DNA of 64,000 bases from Rebecca billardiae RCC1528 (GCA_965240325.2 OZ251238.1:1550001-1614000), one strand, 5' to 3'. Positions 13,701 through 22,444 are shown, counted from the stretch's first letter. The notes: generated by a model from the sequence alone, not told the origin. Numbers and translations are program-made.

Positions 13701-16700
13701 TCAGCGCGACGGCGCGCGGTGGTGGCCCTTCTTGTGCTTCTTGCCGCCGGCGTGCGCCGGCTTGCCGCCGCCGTCGTGCCGCTTCTTGTGCGCGCCGCGC
13801 GCCTCGCCCCCGCCCTCGCCGCCGCCCTCGCCGCCGCCCGCCGCCAGCCGCACGCTCGCCGGCGCGGCGCCGGCGCGGCCCGGCTCGAGCGCCGCCGCCC
13901 AGTCCTCGTCCGTGCCGCGGATGGCGTAGCGCGCGAGGTCGGCGCCGAGCACGACGGCGCCCGCGCCGGCGGCGGCGGGCTCCGCCTCCGCCTCCGCGCG
14001 CGCCGCCAGCGCCGCGCTCGCGCGCGCGCCGCCCTCCGCCAGCTCGGCGCCGAGCGACGGCAGCGCGCCCGCGCGCGCCGCCGAGCGCCGCGCCGCCTCC
14101 GCCGCCGGGCCGTCGGTGGGCAGCTCGGCGGCTGCGCGCGCGCGCGGCACGGCGGGGCGCGGGGCAGGGCGTCGCGTGAGCGCGCGCGCGCGCGCGCGCG
14201 GCGCGCACCACGCGCCCGCCACAGCCGCGCCCACAGCCGCGCGCACCCGCGTCGGCCTCGTAGACCGCCAGGACTGTCTGGGACAGCTTCCGGACCGCCT
14301 TGTTGTACAGGGCGAGGAGCTGCGAGGCGGGGAGGCCGAGGCGCGCGGCGGTCTCGTCGACGCTCGACGCGCGCGGGCCGAGCTCCAGCAGGATCGCCTG
14401 CTGCACCGCCGACAGCCCCACCCGGACTCCCGGCTCCGGGCCGATGCAAAGGCTGGCCAGCGTCGGCGCGAGGTCGGCGACGAGCGAGTGGTCGAGCAGC
14501 GAGCGCGCGTAGGCGCGGAGGCGGCCGAGGTCGCGCGGGGTGAGGAGGACGTCGAGCTGCGCGGCGGAGAGCGCGCAGCCGGCCGCGCCGCCGCCCGCGC
14601 CGCCGCCGGGCAGCGGCTGCAGCAGCGCCAGCGCCGTCTGCGCGTCCACGCCCGCGCGCAGCCGCGCGCTCGGCAGCAGCCGCAGCAGCCGCCGCGCAAA
14701 GTCGGCGTGGTACGCGCGCACCCAGCTGTCGTCCGCGCCGTCCGCGTCGCCGAGCGCGCGCAGCAGCAGCGCCGAGTGCTCCCCCGTCAGCTCGTTCGGC
14801 GCCTGCCGCAGGTACACGGGCGCGTACCCCGCCTTGCGCCAGAACTGCAGCAGCGGGTAGGTGACGCCAAACGCGGTGCCGAGGTAGTCGAGGCGCTGCG
14901 GCGGCAGCTCGGCGAGGCGGCGGAGCAGCGGCGGCAGCGAGGACGCGGCGCGCGGCGCGAGCCGCTCCGCGCGCAGCCCGCCGCCACCCGCCGGCGGCGG
15001 CGCGGCGCGCGGCGCGTCCACGTCGACGGCGCCCGGCGGCGCGGCCGCGCCGAGCGCGCCACCGTACAGCGCCTGCAGCTGCTCGAGCGCGCGCCTGCCG
15101 TAGCCCATGCGCGCGAGGTCGGGGTGCGTGGCGATGCGCACGACGCGCGCGCCCGAGAGCGCGGCGAACGCGTCGTCGCAGAACGCCTGCGACACCGTCC
15201 ACGGCAGCAGGTCGCCCGCGGGCGCGAGGCCGCGCGAGCGGCCCGCGTCGAGCGCCGCGCGCGCCACGCGCCCCTCGAGCGCGAGCTGCACGACGCACAG
15301 AATGTCCGGGAGCCGGGCGGCGAGTCCGGCCGCGCCGCCGGCGGGCTCGGCGGGCAGCGGGCCGAGCAGCACGAACAGCCGGTGCTGCGGCGCGTCGGCG
15401 AGCAGCTGCAGGTCGTTGGGCGAGTTCTTGTAGTGCGAGGCCACACAGAGGCCGACCACGCGCTGCAGGAACGCCTCGGACGCGCTGCCGCCACGACCGC
15501 GCGCACGCACACGCACACCGCGCATGGGGGCAGGGCGCCGGTGAGCGCGCGCGCGCGCGTCGGCGCGGGCGAGGGCGAGGGTGAGGGTTTGCGCGCGCGC
15601 GCGCGGGGCGCGCACGGGTGGTAGGAGAAGAGGGCGTCCCTCTCGACCGCGTACAGCTCGCACGCGGACGGGTGCGGGCACGAGAGCACGGGGCGGACGG
15701 AGGCCTGCGCGTCGAGGCAGAGGAGCGCGTGGAGCCACGACTCGACGGCGTCGCCCGCCGCGTACCGGATCGGCTCGTCCAGGCTCACCTCGCGCAGCCG
15801 CGGCGCCGCCGCCGGGCCGGCGGCGCCGCCGCCGCCGCCCGAAGCGGCGCCGCCCGCCGCGGACGGCGCGGGCGCGGCGCCCTGCTCGCGCAGCGACTTG
15901 ATGAGCTTGAGCGAGAGCGCGCGGCCGGTGCCCTCGTACCCCGAGACGGTGGAGGAGAGCACGGTGACCCACGGCCCGAGCAGCCGCCTCACCACCGGCA
16001 GCGGGATCGCCGCCGCCTCGTCGACCACGACCAGCTCCGCGTGACGAAAGACGGCCGCGTCGGTGGGCTGCACGTACGCGACGGTCTGGCGGTGCGCGCG
16101 GAAGACCTCGACGCGGCCGATCACGCGCACGCCCTTGCCGCGGTGGTGCCCCTCCTCCCCGTCCCCGTCCCCGCCGTCCCCACCACCGCCACCACCACCA
16201 CCACCGCCACCACCCGCCGCCAGCTCGTGCACCGCGTAGTCCGCGTGCTCCTGGTACGCGAGCGCGTCCAGCCCTTTGAAGAGAAACTCAAAGACGGTCT
16301 GGATGTTCTCGGGGGCGGGCGCGGTGAGGAAGATGTTGGAGTAGCCGTGGCCCACCGCGGCGGCGAGGGCGAGGCCGAGCGCGGCCGACTTGCCGCGCCC
16401 GCGCGCCGCCGTGAGCGCCACCGTCTGCCGCGCCGCGCGCTCGGCCACCGCCTCGGCGACGCTGAGCAGAGCGCGCGCCTGGTCGGGCGTGCGGCACAGC
16501 GGGAGGAGCGCGCCGGCGATGGGCACGTCGCGCAGCGAGGCGACCACCTCGTCGAGCTCCGCCTGCGCCGCGCCGCCCCCGCCGCCGCCCGCCCCCCCCT
16601 CCCCCGCGCCGTGCGCGCCCTCCCCCAGCGGCAGCACGTTCAGCTCGTCGTCGAGCACGAGGCAGCGGCCGCACGCGGAGAGGGAGAGGAGGAAGCGCTC

Positions 16701-17406
16701 GTTGAAGCGCGGGGCGAGGGCGGCGTGCGCGTGCGTGCGGTACCGCGCGTGCGCGTCCATCGCCAGCGTGTACAGCTGCGTGAGCGACGCCATCGTCTTG
16801 AGCAGCAGCACGACGAGCCCGCCGCCTTCGACCGTCTCGACGACGCGCGCGAGCGTCGACGGCGTGAGCGCCTCAAAGTCCTGGAGGACGGCCATGCCGA
16901 AGGTGCGGCCGAGCACGCGCGCCGAGTCGCGGTAGTACGCGTACGTGATCTCCGTCGCCGAGATGAACAGCTCGAACGGGTCCGCCGCCGCGGACGCGTC
17001 GTCGAGCAGCCCGCGGCGCTGCGCCTTCTTGATCTGGCCGATCCGCTTCTTGCGGTGCGAGGAGAAGCCGAGGTCCTTCTTGTAGCACCAGAGGACGGAG
17101 GGGCGCGCGCGGACGGAGGCCTTCGAGAGCATGTAGTGCAGGTTCACCACCTGCTCCTTGCCGCCGTCGCCCACGAGCACGACGAGCGAGCGGTGGCGCG
17201 CGGCCACGCCGCCCTCGACGAGCGCGCGCACGCGCGCGTCCACCTTCTGCGCGGCCGCGCGCGTTGTTTTGGTGGGGTTTGGGTGGGCGGAGGGGGGAAA
17301 AGGGGGGTGCGTGTGGGCCACCACGCGCCACCGCCGCCGCCGCCGCCGCGCGCGCGCGCGCGGCGTGGTGCGCGCGGCGTGGTGCGCGCGCGCGCGCCTT
17401 GCGCAT
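13701..17406 (-). CDS. NAT10: RNA cytidine acetyltransferase NAT10/Kre33; exons 17406-17398, 17246-15616, 15484-14247, 14131-13701
   Basis: MRK|KVDARVRALVEGGV N-terminus; RPSVLWCYKKDLGFSSHRKKR; LQDFEALTP; Walker A LTAARGRGKSAALG; VVDEAAAIPLP; GYEGTGR; LFSYHP|ASEAFLQR; SHYKNSPNDLQLL; GNAT RVVRIATHP..GYG; C-terminal LARYAIRGTDEDW. Splice junctions restore the frame. Confidence 0.96.
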
Positions 17407-17723
17407 CTCGCGCCAGGCTTTGACTGGGAGGTTGGCTTCGTGGCCCGGCGGCCGCCGTTGTCAGCCGGACGCACGCCGAGCGGCGCGCCCGGACCGCCGT
17501 TCGGGTCTCACTTGAGCCGACTCGGACGACGAAGCCGGCTCGATGAGGAGGACAGATCGCCATCTCCCCGCGTCGCCGCGGTGGTAGATACGTTTTTTTG
17601 GCGGCTGCTGCCCATCCCACAGTGGAGGAGGGCTCGCGCGCTGGCTGTGGAGCGCCGTGTGCACGGCGGGCGCCACCGCGGCTCGCTGGCTTTGGCTGCT
17701 CGGCGCGCGGCGCGCGGGCGGGC
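17407..17723. promoter_or_regulatory. Probable bidirectional promoter between NAT10 (-) and the hydrolase-TIR gene (+)
   Basis: Only ~317 bp separate the two inferred divergent start codons. Confidence 0.45.
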
Positions 17724-19566
17724 ATGCGGCGGCAGGAGCACTTCCGCCTCGTGCTCGTCACCGACCCGGGCCCCGACCCGGACGACGTCAAGGTGCGCCG
17801 CCGCCGCGCGCGCGCGCGCGCGCGCGCGCCCACCCCGAGCCCGCGCCGACCGCCGACCGCCGACCGCCGACCGCCGACCGCGCGCCGCGCGCCGCGCGCC
17901 GCGCGGCGGGGCAGACGCTGCTCGTGGCGGCGGTGCACCACACCACGCGCCCGAGCTTCACCTTCGAGGCCGCCATCGCCAACGGCGGCGAGCAGCCGCT
18001 CGCGCGCGCCAAGCTCGCGCGCTGCCTGCTCGACCACGTCGGCGCGCACGACGTGCCCGTGGGCGTGGGCAGCGCGGGGAAGGCGTACGCGGCGCAGCCG
18101 CACGAGTACGCGATCTCGGGGTACGAGTCCGTCGACGAGTCCCGGCTGCACGACGGCGCCGACCTCCTCCGCCGCACGCTGCGGCGCGCGGCCAAGCGCT
18201 CGCTTACCGTCGTGTGCATCTCGGGGCTGCGCGATTTCGCCGACGCGATCGCGCGCGACGAGGCGGGCGTGCTGCGCGCGGTGCGCGCGGTGGTGGTGCA
18301 GGGCGGGCTCGAGCCCGACGACGCCTCGCCCACCGGCTGGCGCGCCGACTCCTCCGTCAACAACGGCTTTGACCAGCCCGCGGCCGACGCGGTCTACGCC
18401 TTCTGCCTCGGCAAGGGCGTGCCGCTGACCGTCGTCTCGCGCAACGCGGTGCCGCTGCTGCCGATGCAGCTCGCGAAGAGCTTCGCGGAGCGCACGCAGT
18501 GCCCCGTGATGCGCTACCTCGCCGACGCGCAGTTCCTCGGCCTCGAGGGCCTCTGGCTCAAGCTGTGCGAGGGGAGGCTGCCGCCGCGCTGCACCAAGGG
18601 CTGGTACTTTGCGACCTTCTGCGGCGTGGACGCGGCCGAGTTCGCGGCGTCGGGCTTCGAGGGGCTGGGGTCGGACGCGCGGATCTCGGCGCACCTGAAC
18701 GGGTACGTCAAGCCGTACGACGTGCTCGCGCTCATGGCCGCGCTCCCCGACACGCGGCCGCTCTTTGGCGCGGGCGCGCCGCCGGGCGAGCGCGTGCCGC
18801 CCGCGCGCGGCGGCGCGCCGCACCGGCTGCTGCTGCGCGTGGAGGACACGATCGACGTGTCGCACGTGCTCAAGCTGCTGCGCGACGCGTACCACGAGGT
18901 GGTGCTCGCCACGCGCACGCTCGCGCGCGCCGCCGCCGCCGAGCCCGACGCCGCCCAGCGCGCGGGCCACGACGACGACGGCGGCGGCGGCGGCGGCGGC
19001 GCGGGCGCGCGGCACGCGCGCCCGTCCGCGGGCGGCGTGGTCGAGCTGCCGCGCCCGCCGTCGCTCGGCTCGCTCGGCGCGCGGCCCACGCCGCCGGGCG
19101 GCGGCGGCGGTGGCGCCGAGCCCGCCCGCCCGCCCGCCGGCAGCGCCTCGCCGGGCGGCGCCGCGCTCGGCGTCGAGCTGCGGCTGCGCACGCACCTCAC
19201 GCTGCGCTCGCCCGACGCCAAGCACGAGGCGGCGGCGCGCGGCTCGTCCGCGTCGGTGGCGTCGGTGGACAGCGCGGGCTGTGGCGGCGGCGCGCCGCCC
19301 GCCACGCTGCCCGCCGCGCGCGACGGCTCGGGCGCCTTTGGCGCCGCCGGGTGCGGCGCGCTGCCGGGCGCCACGCCGGCGCTGCCGCTGCCGCCGGGCG
19401 CGGGCGGCGGGCCGCCGCCGATCGTCGGCTCGGCGGGGTGCTCCAAGCGGCACGCCGTCGACGCGTCCGGCGCGTTCCCCACCTCGTTCCTCGCCCAGCC
19501 CTCCGAGGGCGTCTTTGCGCGCAAGCGCGGCGCGGCGGCGAGCGCGCTGCCCGGCGCGGCGGCCGC

Positions 19567-19626
<60 letters not shown>

Positions 19627-21952
19627 CGAGCCGCCGCTCTCGATGGCGGAGGTGGAGGAGGGCGGCGAGGACGAGGCGGAGCAGGCGGCGGCGCCGACGG
19701 CGACGACGGCGCCCGCCGCCGCGCCCCGCCCCGCGCGCTGCTCGCGCCCGGCGCGCGGCTCGACCGAGTCCGCGGCCGGCGGCGGCGTCGGCGTCGGCCG
19801 GCACAGCAGCGGCAGCCGGCTCACCGCCGCTGGCAACGAGGGCGCGGACGCGTCCGCGGCGGAGGGCGTGCTGTCGCCCGAGGACATTGACGAGCTGCTC
19901 GGCCGCGCGGTGCGGCAGGTGGCGGCGCGGCGGCAGGGCGTCGCCGCCGCCGCCGCGCGCGCGGGCGCGCTCGCGGCCCTCGTGCTCGCCGCCGCGGCGC
20001 TCGCCGATTCGCTCGCGCTCGCGCTGCTGGGTAGCGGCGGCGGCGGCGGCGGCGGCGCGGCGGCGCTGGGCGCGCCGCTCGCGTCGGCGGCGGAGCCCGG
20101 GCCGTCGGCGCGCGCGCGCGCCGCGGCGCTGCTCGTGCTCACCGACCTCGCCCTCGCCCTCGCCTCCGTCGGCGTCGACGGCCTCGTCGACGTCGAGCGC
20201 GACGGCTCGGCCGCGCGCGTCGGCGGCTGCGCGGCGGTCGTGCGCGCGGCGCACGCGGGCCTCGCGGCCGCGCTCGCGGCCGCGCTCGCGGCGGCGGGCG
20301 ACGCGGCGGGCGGCGCGGCGTGCGCCGCGCTGGGCGGCGCGTACGCGGCGTGCGCGCTCGCGCTCGCGCTCTGCGCCGCGCTCGCCGCCGCGCCCGCCGG
20401 CGGCGGCGGCGCGCGCGCGCGCGCGCGCGCGGCCGGCTGGCGCGCGCTCGGCGCGTGCGCCGCCGCCGAGGCGGCGGTTCTCGGGCTGGGCGGCGCGCGC
20501 GGCTGCTGCGGCGCGGACGGCGCGGCGCTGCTGTGCGCCGCCGCGCTGCTCGCGCCGCTCGCCTGCGCCGCGCTCACCCGCGCCGTGCGCGAGGCCGCCG
20601 CGCGCGCGCTCGCCGCCGCCTTCGAGGCGCGCGGCGCGTACGCGCCGCTCGCCGGGCTGATCGGGTTTGGCGCGCGCGACGAGCTGGCCGTGTCGGCGCT
20701 CGTGCCCGAGGCGATGCGCGTGTTCCGCCCGGTCGCGCTCACGCCGCGCGCGCTGCGCTTCCTCGACCTCTCCACCGGCGGCGGCGCGGGCGCCGCCGCC
20801 GCCGCCGCCGGGCCCGACGCGGGCAGCGCGCACGGCCGCGCGGCGTGCGGCGCGGGCGCCGCCTACGCGGCGACGATCGCGGCCGAGGCGGACGCGGTGG
20901 CGAGCGTGCAGCAGCAGCAGCAGCAGCACGCGAAGCAGGAGGCGGAGGCGCAGCCGCAGGAGGAGGGGACGCCGCCGCGCGGCCGCGCGGCGCGCCGCTC
21001 GGCCGAGCGCCGCGGCCGGCCCGAGCGCGGCTCGGTCGGCGGCGGCGTCGACCGGCTGCTCGCGCCCGTCGCGCACAAGCTCGCGCGCGCGCCCGGCGCG
21101 GGCGGCGGCGCGGGCGGCGGCGCGCCGCTCGCGGACGCGTACGTCGTGCACGCGTGGGCGGACGACGCGGCGGGCAAGGCGGCGGCGCTGCGCGCGTGGG
21201 CGCTCGAGTTTGAGCGCGCGCGCGGCCGCGCGCCCGTCGTCTGGCTCGACGCGCTCTGCGCCGACCCGCTGCTCACCCCGCTCGAGGCCCTCGCGCACAT
21301 GCCCATCTATTTGGCGCGCTGCCGCTCACTGCTGCTGCTCGCCGGGCCGCGGATGACGGATCGGCTGTGGGTGGCGGCCGAGCTCTACTCGTGGCGCGCG
21401 TCGGGCGGGCTGGCGGAGCAGTGCGCGGTGGTGCTCGCCGCGCCCGAGGAGGCCGACGCCGCGCAGCGCGCCGCGCTCTGGGGCGAGGTCGTCGGCGCCT
21501 TCGACGCGTTCCACGTCATGTGGGCCGGCGCCGCCGACGACGACGTGCAGGCGCGGATCGCGCACGCCGTGACGCTCGCGACCGCGTCGCACTTCAACGA
21601 GGGGGTGCGCTCGTACCTCGAGCCCGTGCAGCGCGCGGCGGAGCGCGAGGCGAAGGCGGCGCGCGACGAGGCCAAGCGGCAGCAGCAGCAGCAGGGCGCC
21701 GAGGGCGCGGCGGGCGCCGCGCTGCCGCCGCCCGCCGGCGGCGCCGCCGCCGACGCCGATGCGTCCGCCGACGCGCTCGGCGCGCTCGGCGGCGCGCCCG
21801 GCGGCGCCGCGTCGCGCCGCGGCACCGGGCCGGCGGCGGACGCGGTCGCGGCGGCGACCGCGGCGGGCGGGCGCGCGTCGCGCATCAGCCCGCAGACGCC
21901 GACGCGCTGCCACGTCGGCGGCGCGCTCACCTCCATGTCGCGCGCGCTCATG

Positions 21953-21996
<44 letters not shown>

Positions 21997-22444
21997 GCGG
22001 CGCGGCTCGATGGACGCGCTCGGCCACGCCGGCTCGTGCGGCTCGATGCGCGCCGACCGGCTCTCCTCGTCGATGCGCGCGTCGCGCGCGGCGCACGCCG
22101 CCGACGGCGCCGAGGGCGGCGGCACGGTGCGCGCGCGGCTCAAGTCCACCATCCTCGGCCGCGGCAGCGCGAGCACCGCGCCGGCCGACCCGTCGGCGCC
22201 GCAGCCGCCCGCGGACGCGTCGGCGGACGCCGAGCGCGCGACGCCGCCGCGCCGCTCGCTCAACATCTCGCACGCGAGCGTGGTCTCGGTCGAGTCGGGC
22301 GCCGGGCGCAGCAGCGGCGGCGACGCCGGCGCCGACGCCGAGGGCGGGAGCCGCGGCGGCTCCGCGGCGCACTCGCCCGCGCAGCACGCCGGCGGCGCGA
22401 GCAGCCGGCGCGAGCGCGCCGCGCAGCAGCAGCCGGGCCGTTGA
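17724..22444 (+). CDS. XopQ/HopQ1-like nucleoside hydrolase - membrane region - TIR-like domain fusion (~1530 aa); exons 17724-17792 and 17915-22444
   Basis: Phase-0 GT..AG intron 17793-17914 rebuilds LVLVTDPGPDPDDVK|TLLVAA, the Asp-rich IU-nucleoside-hydrolase metal motif. It is followed by DVPVGVG, VVVQGG, SSVNNGFD, GLEGLW..GWYFATF and YDVLALMAA. Hydrophobic helices at ~19960-20700. TIR-like DAYVVHAWADD..K..L..PVVWLD..C..MPIYLARCRSLLLLAGP...RLWVAAEL at ~21131-21630. The exact start codon is uncertain. Confidence 0.82.

Follow-up and report, generated by a model that had tools for sequence, protein, structure and literature searches.

The stretch of Rebecca billardiae RCC1528 DNA analysed here (GCA_965240325.2 OZ251238.1:1550001-1614000; 64,000 nucleotides, hereafter the window) carries a gene at positions 17724-22444 on the + strand. 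Its predicted product almost certainly joins three parts in one protein: a nucleoside-hydrolase-fold domain resembling the bacterial effectors XopQ and HopQ1, a membrane block and a TIR-like domain. What is new here is a putative TIR signalling protein with a built-in enzyme of a known signal-degrading type. Our literature search found no description of a fusion between XopQ or a HopQ1-like protein (HLP) and TIR, which agrees with the claim of an undescribed architecture made in an earlier, sequence-only reading of this DNA.

A short exon and a long one, separated by a GT-AG intron of 122 nt, together encode a product of 1,532 residues. Exon 1 (17724..17792, +) has 23 codons (MRRQEHFRLVLVTDPGPDPDDVK) and holds the entire Ca2+/substrate aspartate motif TDPGPDPDD (D14, D18, D20 and D21). 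The intron (17793..17914, +) is in phase 0 and consists of a GC-rich simple repeat with a 7-nt repeat. Exon 2 (17915-22444, +) runs from the remainder of the hydrolase to the stop codon at 22442-22444. The sequence begins with ATG at 17724 and reads ...GAC GAC GTC AAG/GTGCGC at the donor site; the acceptor is ...GGGGCAG/ACG at 17914/17915. Joining 17792 to 17915 produced the junction TDPGPDPDDVK/TLLVAAV, which aligned without gaps with 19 homologues (consensus TDPGPDPDDVKALLVAA). The aspartate motif lies upstream of the long open reading frame (ORF) 17657-22444, in another reading frame, so that an ORF track hides the hydrolase motif, as the sequence-only reading had pointed out.

The G+C content across the region was 75-87%. 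DNA with more than 80% G+C yields long chance ORFs, and the evidence for the gene is therefore codon periodicity and homology rather than ORF length. The G+C content at third codon positions (GC3) was 0.95-1.00 in each 180-nt segment, in a single frame throughout from ~17900 to 22444, and it dropped to ~0.6 immediately past the stop codon; the coding frame is that of ORF 17657-22444. This unbroken frame, together with the junction that rebuilds the family motif, bears out the proposed intron at 17793-17914 and the single polypeptide. The locus is thus predicted to be a single gene for a single polypeptide, in which additional in-frame introns within the low-complexity linkers are possible. An antisense ORF of 1,384 aa (17144-21298, - strand) overlaps the gene without any homology signal; stop codons are scarce at >80% G+C, which accounts for it.

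An early intron was also annotated in the Diacronema lutheri paralogue KFE25_008828 (JAGTXO010000001.1; L003:1501-1640). This GC-AG intron is ~103 nt long and in phase 1. It splits the codon for the motif's third Asp, at a distance of 11 nt upstream from the position equivalent to the phase-0 GT-AG site in the window. The early intron is therefore a family trait, though its exact position varies. The difference in position could be due to sliding, independent gain or annotation choice.

After exon 1, the hydrolase domain occupies aa 24-360 (17915..18925, +). The sole PDB sequence matches of the domain in the window were XopQ structures (4P5F/4KL0, E 2e-16). When a 24-sequence family profile was used, XopQ (7JLU chain B, 4P5F, 4KL0) was matched at E 1.5e-41 over positions 6-314 of 350, whereas the best canonical nucleoside hydrolase was matched at E 2e-10 over positions 7-180 only, which is the N-terminal half. 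The solved IU-nucleoside hydrolases (IU-NHs) lay at E 2e-10 to 1e-4. In Pfam, the exon-2 part alone, without the motif-bearing exon 1, scored 25.8 bits for IU_nuc_hydro (PF01156) against a cut-off of 34.2, and paralogues with an intact N-terminus exceeded this cut-off (38.9-56.2 bits). A tblastn search of 72,556 plasmids with the nucleoside-hydrolase domain of the homologue P0129 returned 7 records (~26% identity, 87% coverage); six of the matches fall within hopQ1-1 or xopQ genes by annotation, and the seventh in DNA that carries no annotation. A scan of genome contigs with the hydrolase alignment gave no matches, and the derived pattern PDPDD[VI]K[AT][LI] was specific to the algal family.

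The algal domain aligned collinearly, over ~310 residues, with HopQ1 (P. savastanoi pv. phaseolicola 1448A) and XopQ (Robbsia andropogonis), type III effectors of plant-pathogenic bacteria which together with RipB form the closest known group. The shared elements are (T/S)DPxxDPDD, GG, NN, SF, GLW, W.F.TF and YD. The motif is non-canonical, being TDPGPDPDD in the window and TDPNKDPDD in XopQ/HopQ1 as against DxDxxxDD in the canonical enzymes, and P0091 is the only full-length family member in which it is not intact. The Tyr of XopQ AYNN, which we take to be the active-site residue Y279, is replaced by Val (SVNN) in the window and in most of the algal family. The hydrolase motif already begins at residue 13, so the algal protein is without the long N-terminal extension of HopQ1/XopQ, which contains the secretion and 14-3-3 region (~90-120 residues in the effectors). 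XopQ and HopQ1 are secreted effectors, whereas the algal protein is endogenous, is predicted to sit in the membrane and includes a TIR-like domain. By sequence comparison, the N-terminal domain is specifically XopQ/HopQ1-like rather than a housekeeping IU-NH, and on this point the sequence-only reading was right (profile E 1.5e-41 to XopQ versus 2e-10 to the best canonical enzyme).

A HopQ1-like clade with a non-canonical Ca2+ site is known from heterokont and haptophyte algae (Piechocki et al. 2018, PMC6019455). Since algal proteins of this type have already been reported, the N-terminal domain adds one more member to a clade described before, and it fits the published description. That study covers the hydrolase domain only: TIR and transmembrane regions have 0 occurrences in it, and pavlovophytes are unnamed.

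Between the two domains lies an Ala/Gly/Pro-rich low-complexity linker (aa 361-697; 18926..19936, +), which is not conserved among homologues, has a GC3 of ~0.97-1.0 and contains a 19-residue Gly run. It is followed by the membrane block (aa 698-914; 19937..20587, +) with ~6 hydrophobic helices on the Kyte-Doolittle scale, and by a conserved juxtamembrane segment (aa 915-976; 20588..20773, +). The profile of 20 aligned family members between both domains showed the same arrangement, with six hydrophobic peaks and then the family motif APLxxLxGFG ... FRPVxL, which supports the hydrophobic helices first noticed in the window. Lys and Arg are concentrated ahead of helix 1, within loops 2 and 4 and past helix 6, and loops 1, 3 and 5 are near neutral. 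The N-terminus has no signal-peptide-like character. This charge bias and the character of the N-terminus fit six helices with both ends inside, which would place both domains in the cytosol. Pfam searches of whole homologues returned IU_nuc_hydro alone and no known family for the membrane block, and an ESM Atlas search with the membrane block of P0129 returned only unnamed haptophyte clusters (scores up to 0.68). Outside the domains and the membrane part, the protein consists of Ala/Gly/Pro-rich linker sequence with triplet repeats. Its C-terminal tail (aa 1266-1532), also of low complexity, extends with the stop codon over 21641..22444 (+). The linker Gly runs of 19 and 14 residues are encoded by the triplet repeats GCG x33 (19527-19625) and GGC x18 (21953-22006), which are likely length-polymorphic.

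The C-terminal domain (aa 1090-1265; 21113..21640, +) belongs to a large family, with 1,572 clusters at E <= 1e-3 in a HMMER search. AlphaFold2 gave a predicted local confidence (pLDDT) of 96.8 and a predicted template modelling (TM) score (pTM) of 0.91 when a 69-sequence alignment was supplied; this model was used below, since the single C-terminal-domain sequence reached a pLDDT of only 42.6. In a Foldseek search of the PDB, the best 50 matches were all TIR domains (RPP1, RUN1, SNC1, SARM1, MyD88, MAL, SPARTA, AbTir) at E ~1e-2. VIA-align gave Z scores up to 10.3 (RPP1, RUN1, SARM1 and MyD88 among the matches) with 112-137 aligned residues at ~3 Angstrom, and 68 chains reached Z >= 8. Among the Swiss-Prot structure matches, 29 of 30 bear names of known TIR-domain proteins. 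At the level of sequence profiles, the domain matched the TIR domains of TLR15 and SIGIRR (E 0.013-0.03), precisely at the WCxxEL segment.

In TIR enzymes that cleave nicotinamide adenine dinucleotide (NADases), the catalytic Glu belongs to a WxxxE motif in the helix that follows the third strand. In the model, W1175 and E1179 (Glu codon 21380-21382) lie in helix 85-96 after strand 73-77, which is the third strand, and they align to WCxYEL of the TLR15 TIR. We infer from motif and secondary structure, rather than from residue-level superposition, that E1179 is equivalent to SARM1 E642. Compared with catalytic TIRs (SARM1, RPP1, RUN1, BdTIR, AbTir, ThsB, SPARTA; Z 8-10), the algal domain has the same strand and helix order with WxxxE in the helix after strand C. 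In contrast, its sequence identity to them is 6-13%, it falls below the Pfam TIR thresholds, and it has an extra helical C-terminal part with near-invariant D131, F133, N162 and R166.

The nearest predicted structures (AFDB and Atlas; TM 0.80-0.89) are haptophyte and dinoflagellate proteins, and the automatic names of the AFDB neighbours are 'TIR domain-containing' or 'Heterokaryon incompatibility domain-containing'. In relatives, Pfam HET (PF06985) was matched below threshold in 6 of 69 (best E 0.03) and 15 of 47 sequences (best E 0.0056), and not in the window. The algal family also shares with fungal HET the motif pattern (Y/F)xxHSW...D, WLDxxCxDQ and LPxYxxxC..LLVL, all Pfam matches being below the gathering threshold. 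The fungal HET domain is reported to be a remote TIR relative with unknown biochemical function (PMC10197012). A PADLOC search gave no meaningful match for the C-terminal family. By the model, the C-terminal domain has the TIR fold; it keeps WxxxE and is best called a TIR/HET-like domain of a protist family. The earlier description of a TIR-like domain with a conserved Glu was therefore right in fold and motif and needs revision in the family assignment, since no Pfam TIR threshold was passed. The same TIR/HET-like domain was also seen in other haptophytes, dinoflagellates and oomycetes, joined to C-type lectin, TPR, HNOB, methyltransferase or PPM phosphatase domains; it behaves like a promiscuous module for signalling or effector functions.

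The gene in the window is not alone in having this architecture. At least 40 other proteins share the order of hydrolase, 4-6 hydrophobic segments and C-terminal domain, and at least 53 do so when further cluster members are counted. Among them are 12 or more paralogues from D. lutheri, several proteins of Pavlovales sp. CCMP2436, Pavlova gyrans transcripts and environmental contigs. The host of the gene, which the sequence-only reading took for an alga, is a haptophyte. One P. gyrans transcript ORF (MMETSP1466; P0223, 1,171 aa) is complete and has all three modules. The best full-length relative of the window protein is D. lutheri KFE25_004819 (59% identity), and the public annotation of the D. 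lutheri members is 'hypothetical', 'IU-NH domain-containing' or 'TIR domain-containing'. The search for the same fusion in relatives, which had been proposed together with the sequence-only reading, thus showed that pavlovophytes have a whole multigene family of this kind.

A tree of 141 C-terminal domains placed the 43 that are linked to a hydrolase together in one 94-leaf clade (support 0.90), of which the rest are mostly short or partial sequences. This result indicates a single fusion event followed by expansion. The sister clade without the hydrolase is clearly homologous (hhalign probability 100%, E 2e-63). In this sister clade W and E of the motif are both invariant (47/47), which argues for an essential function of the Glu across the wider family. 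Of the 50 fusions, 36 keep the Glu, and its constraint is relaxed in the fused clade, as happens where a family contains both active and regulatory paralogues. D17, G98, N162 and R166 (domain numbering) are near-invariant in the hydrolase-linked sequences of the 69-sequence alignment and may mark a second functional site.

XopQ homologues are reported to cleave the ribose-ribose O-glycosidic bond of the TIR product 2'-cyclic ADP-ribose (2'cADPR) to ADP-ribose (ADPR) with near diffusion-limited efficiency; they are inactive on 3'cADPR, canonical cADPR, pRib-AMP and 2',3'-cyclic nucleotide monophosphates, and mutation of motif aspartates, as in D120N, abolishes the activity (Roth et al., bioRxiv 10.64898/2026.06.15.732069). 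Algae and fusions are unmentioned in that preprint. By motif position, D120 of XopQ corresponds to D18 in the window. The sequence-only reading had described XopQ as reported to degrade 2',3'-cAMP/cGMP, an activity that the preprint did not find; the substrate is now reported to be 2'cADPR. Because XopQ hydrolyses a TIR product, the leading reading of the fusion is that one membrane protein pairs the maker of a signal with its breaker; we hold this reading tentatively and rate it just short of probable.

The following mechanism would fit this pairing. The product may be a six-pass membrane protein of a pavlovophyte (haptophyte), ~1,530 aa long, with both large domains facing the cytosol. Clustering of the protein in the membrane could cause the TIR-like domain to cleave NAD+ to an ADPR-type product, for example a cyclic ADPR isomer. 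The XopQ-like domain would then, like XopQ, split 2'cADPR or another such TIR product at the ribose-ribose bond to give linear ADPR. With maker and breaker on one chain, the nucleotide signal would be local and self-limiting, as with GGDEF-EAL proteins for cyclic di-GMP. GGDEF-EAL proteins carry the maker and the breaker of one nucleotide signal on one chain and are often membrane-bound, with one domain often degenerate in paralogues. Their folds and chemistry are unrelated to those of the algal fusion, so the comparison is an analogy only. The most plausible setting would be anti-viral or cell-death signalling, and a 'self-contained immune receptor', as the protein had been labelled, is what one may infer from such an arrangement. 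Membrane-anchored TIR proteins of another haptophyte, Gephyrocapsa huxleyi, are induced during virus infection (PMC12489294). They have an N-terminal extracellular or multi-transmembrane region followed by a cytosolic TIR with the Glu; they come from a different haptophyte class, and nucleoside hydrolases have 0 occurrences in that report.

Several observations weigh against a maker and breaker on one chain. The replacement of the AYNN Tyr by Val means that the substrate specificity may differ from that of XopQ. The Foldseek TM scores to solved TIRs were low (0.40-0.50; over the best 50 matches 0.31-0.44 normalised to the model and 0.09-0.53 to the chain). The domain in the window gave no hit to any of the Pfam models TIR, TIR_2 and ThsB_TIR under curated thresholds. 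Among relatives, TIR_2 was matched in 9 of 69 (best E 7e-4) and in 27 of 47 sequences (best E 5e-5), below the 28-bit cut-off where shown, and the other sub-threshold matches were to TIR and ThsB_TIR. The six helices with both domains in the cytosol are predicted at the level of hydropathy, from which the helix count was taken. In the hydrolase-linked clade, the Glu was kept in 61 and the Trp in 40 of the 94 sequences; from these losses, many paralogues are probably not NADases and the hydrolase is the more constrained partner.

This uneven constraint bears on another explanation, in which the hydrolase does the work and the TIR/HET-like domain has no more than an assembly or regulatory role, recruiting the protein to TIR assemblies. 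The protein would then be a membrane-anchored hydrolase of 2'cADPR (or a related nucleotide) that clears the signals of the cell's other TIR proteins or of invaders. We consider this explanation unlikely but worth serious attention. The aspartate motif is near-invariant, whereas the WxxxE Glu is lost in about one third of the hydrolase-linked clade, and in protists this TIR/HET-like domain occurs fused to many other partners. TIR domains are also known as protein-protein assembly modules (review PMC8635717). However, the copy in the window retains W1175 and E1179, and 36 of the 50 fusions have the Glu. The XopQ-like domain might otherwise be a sensor of ADPR or 2'cADPR, which gates a six-helix pore or channel or triggers TIR assembly, with hydrolysis perhaps serving as a timer. 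An enzyme-derived nucleotide-binding domain on a channel is found in TRPM2 with NUDT9-H. A sensor role would agree with the crystal structure of XopQ with bound ADPR (4P5F), with the conservation of the membrane block and juxtamembrane motif, and with Type VI Thoeris, where 2'cADPR activates an effector (ThsG) that sometimes bears transmembrane helices. It is nevertheless improbable, because all aspartates of the catalytic motif are kept, which are unnecessary for binding alone, and the membrane block matched no channel family.

Two further explanations were rejected. In one of them the protein is an ordinary nucleoside hydrolase of purine/pyrimidine salvage tethered to the membrane, and the fold likeness of the C-terminal domain is incidental. 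Pfam IU_nuc_hydro is indeed present in homologues. Canonical IU-NH structures were matched 31 orders of magnitude worse than XopQ and over the N-terminal half only, the motif is of the non-canonical XopQ type, and XopQ and HopQ1 are inactive on standard nucleosides; on the basis of the profile comparison (1.5e-41 to XopQ versus 2e-10 to the best canonical enzyme), this housekeeping reading was dismissed as very improbable. In the other, the region would hold two separate genes or an open-frame artefact of GC-rich DNA, and chance ORFs of more than 1,000 aa do occur on both strands here. Against this, a single frame keeps a GC3 of ~1.0 through every linker without a break, up to the stop codon, and the three-part order recurs in at least 40 other proteins, including complete transcript-derived ORFs. 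The continuous GC3 frame and the recurrence of the same layout in relatives led us to discard the two-gene reading, for which we see scarcely any room.

A more specific proposal, that haptophytes run a 2'cADPR-type TIR pathway with synthase and dedicated hydrolase in one membrane protein family, is possible though rather doubtful. If it holds, eukaryotic TIR signalling would have an ancient off-switch enzyme of its own, to which the XopQ/HopQ1 effectors of plant pathogens would be a secreted counterpart. The fusion would in that event also be independent Rosetta-stone evidence for the functional link between XopQ and TIR reported biochemically in 2026. On genomic grounds alone, a natural fusion of XopQ-type and TIR-type domains that is conserved and expanded in a whole algal class supports this link. 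It also points to immune signalling of the cyclic-ADPR type in marine microalgae, complete with an enzyme to end the signal; TIR biology is barely explored in these organisms. With this family one has simple proteins in which to test what the TIR/HET-like domain of a protist produces, fungal HET being a distant relative.

The divergently oriented upstream neighbour of the gene (14787-17474, - strand) is a homologue of the RNA cytidine acetyltransferase NAT10/TmcA, with Pfam matches to TmcA_N (6e-54) and to the NAT10 helicase domain (3e-51). The reading frame decays in the C-terminal part of its ORF, and this neighbour probably carries introns.

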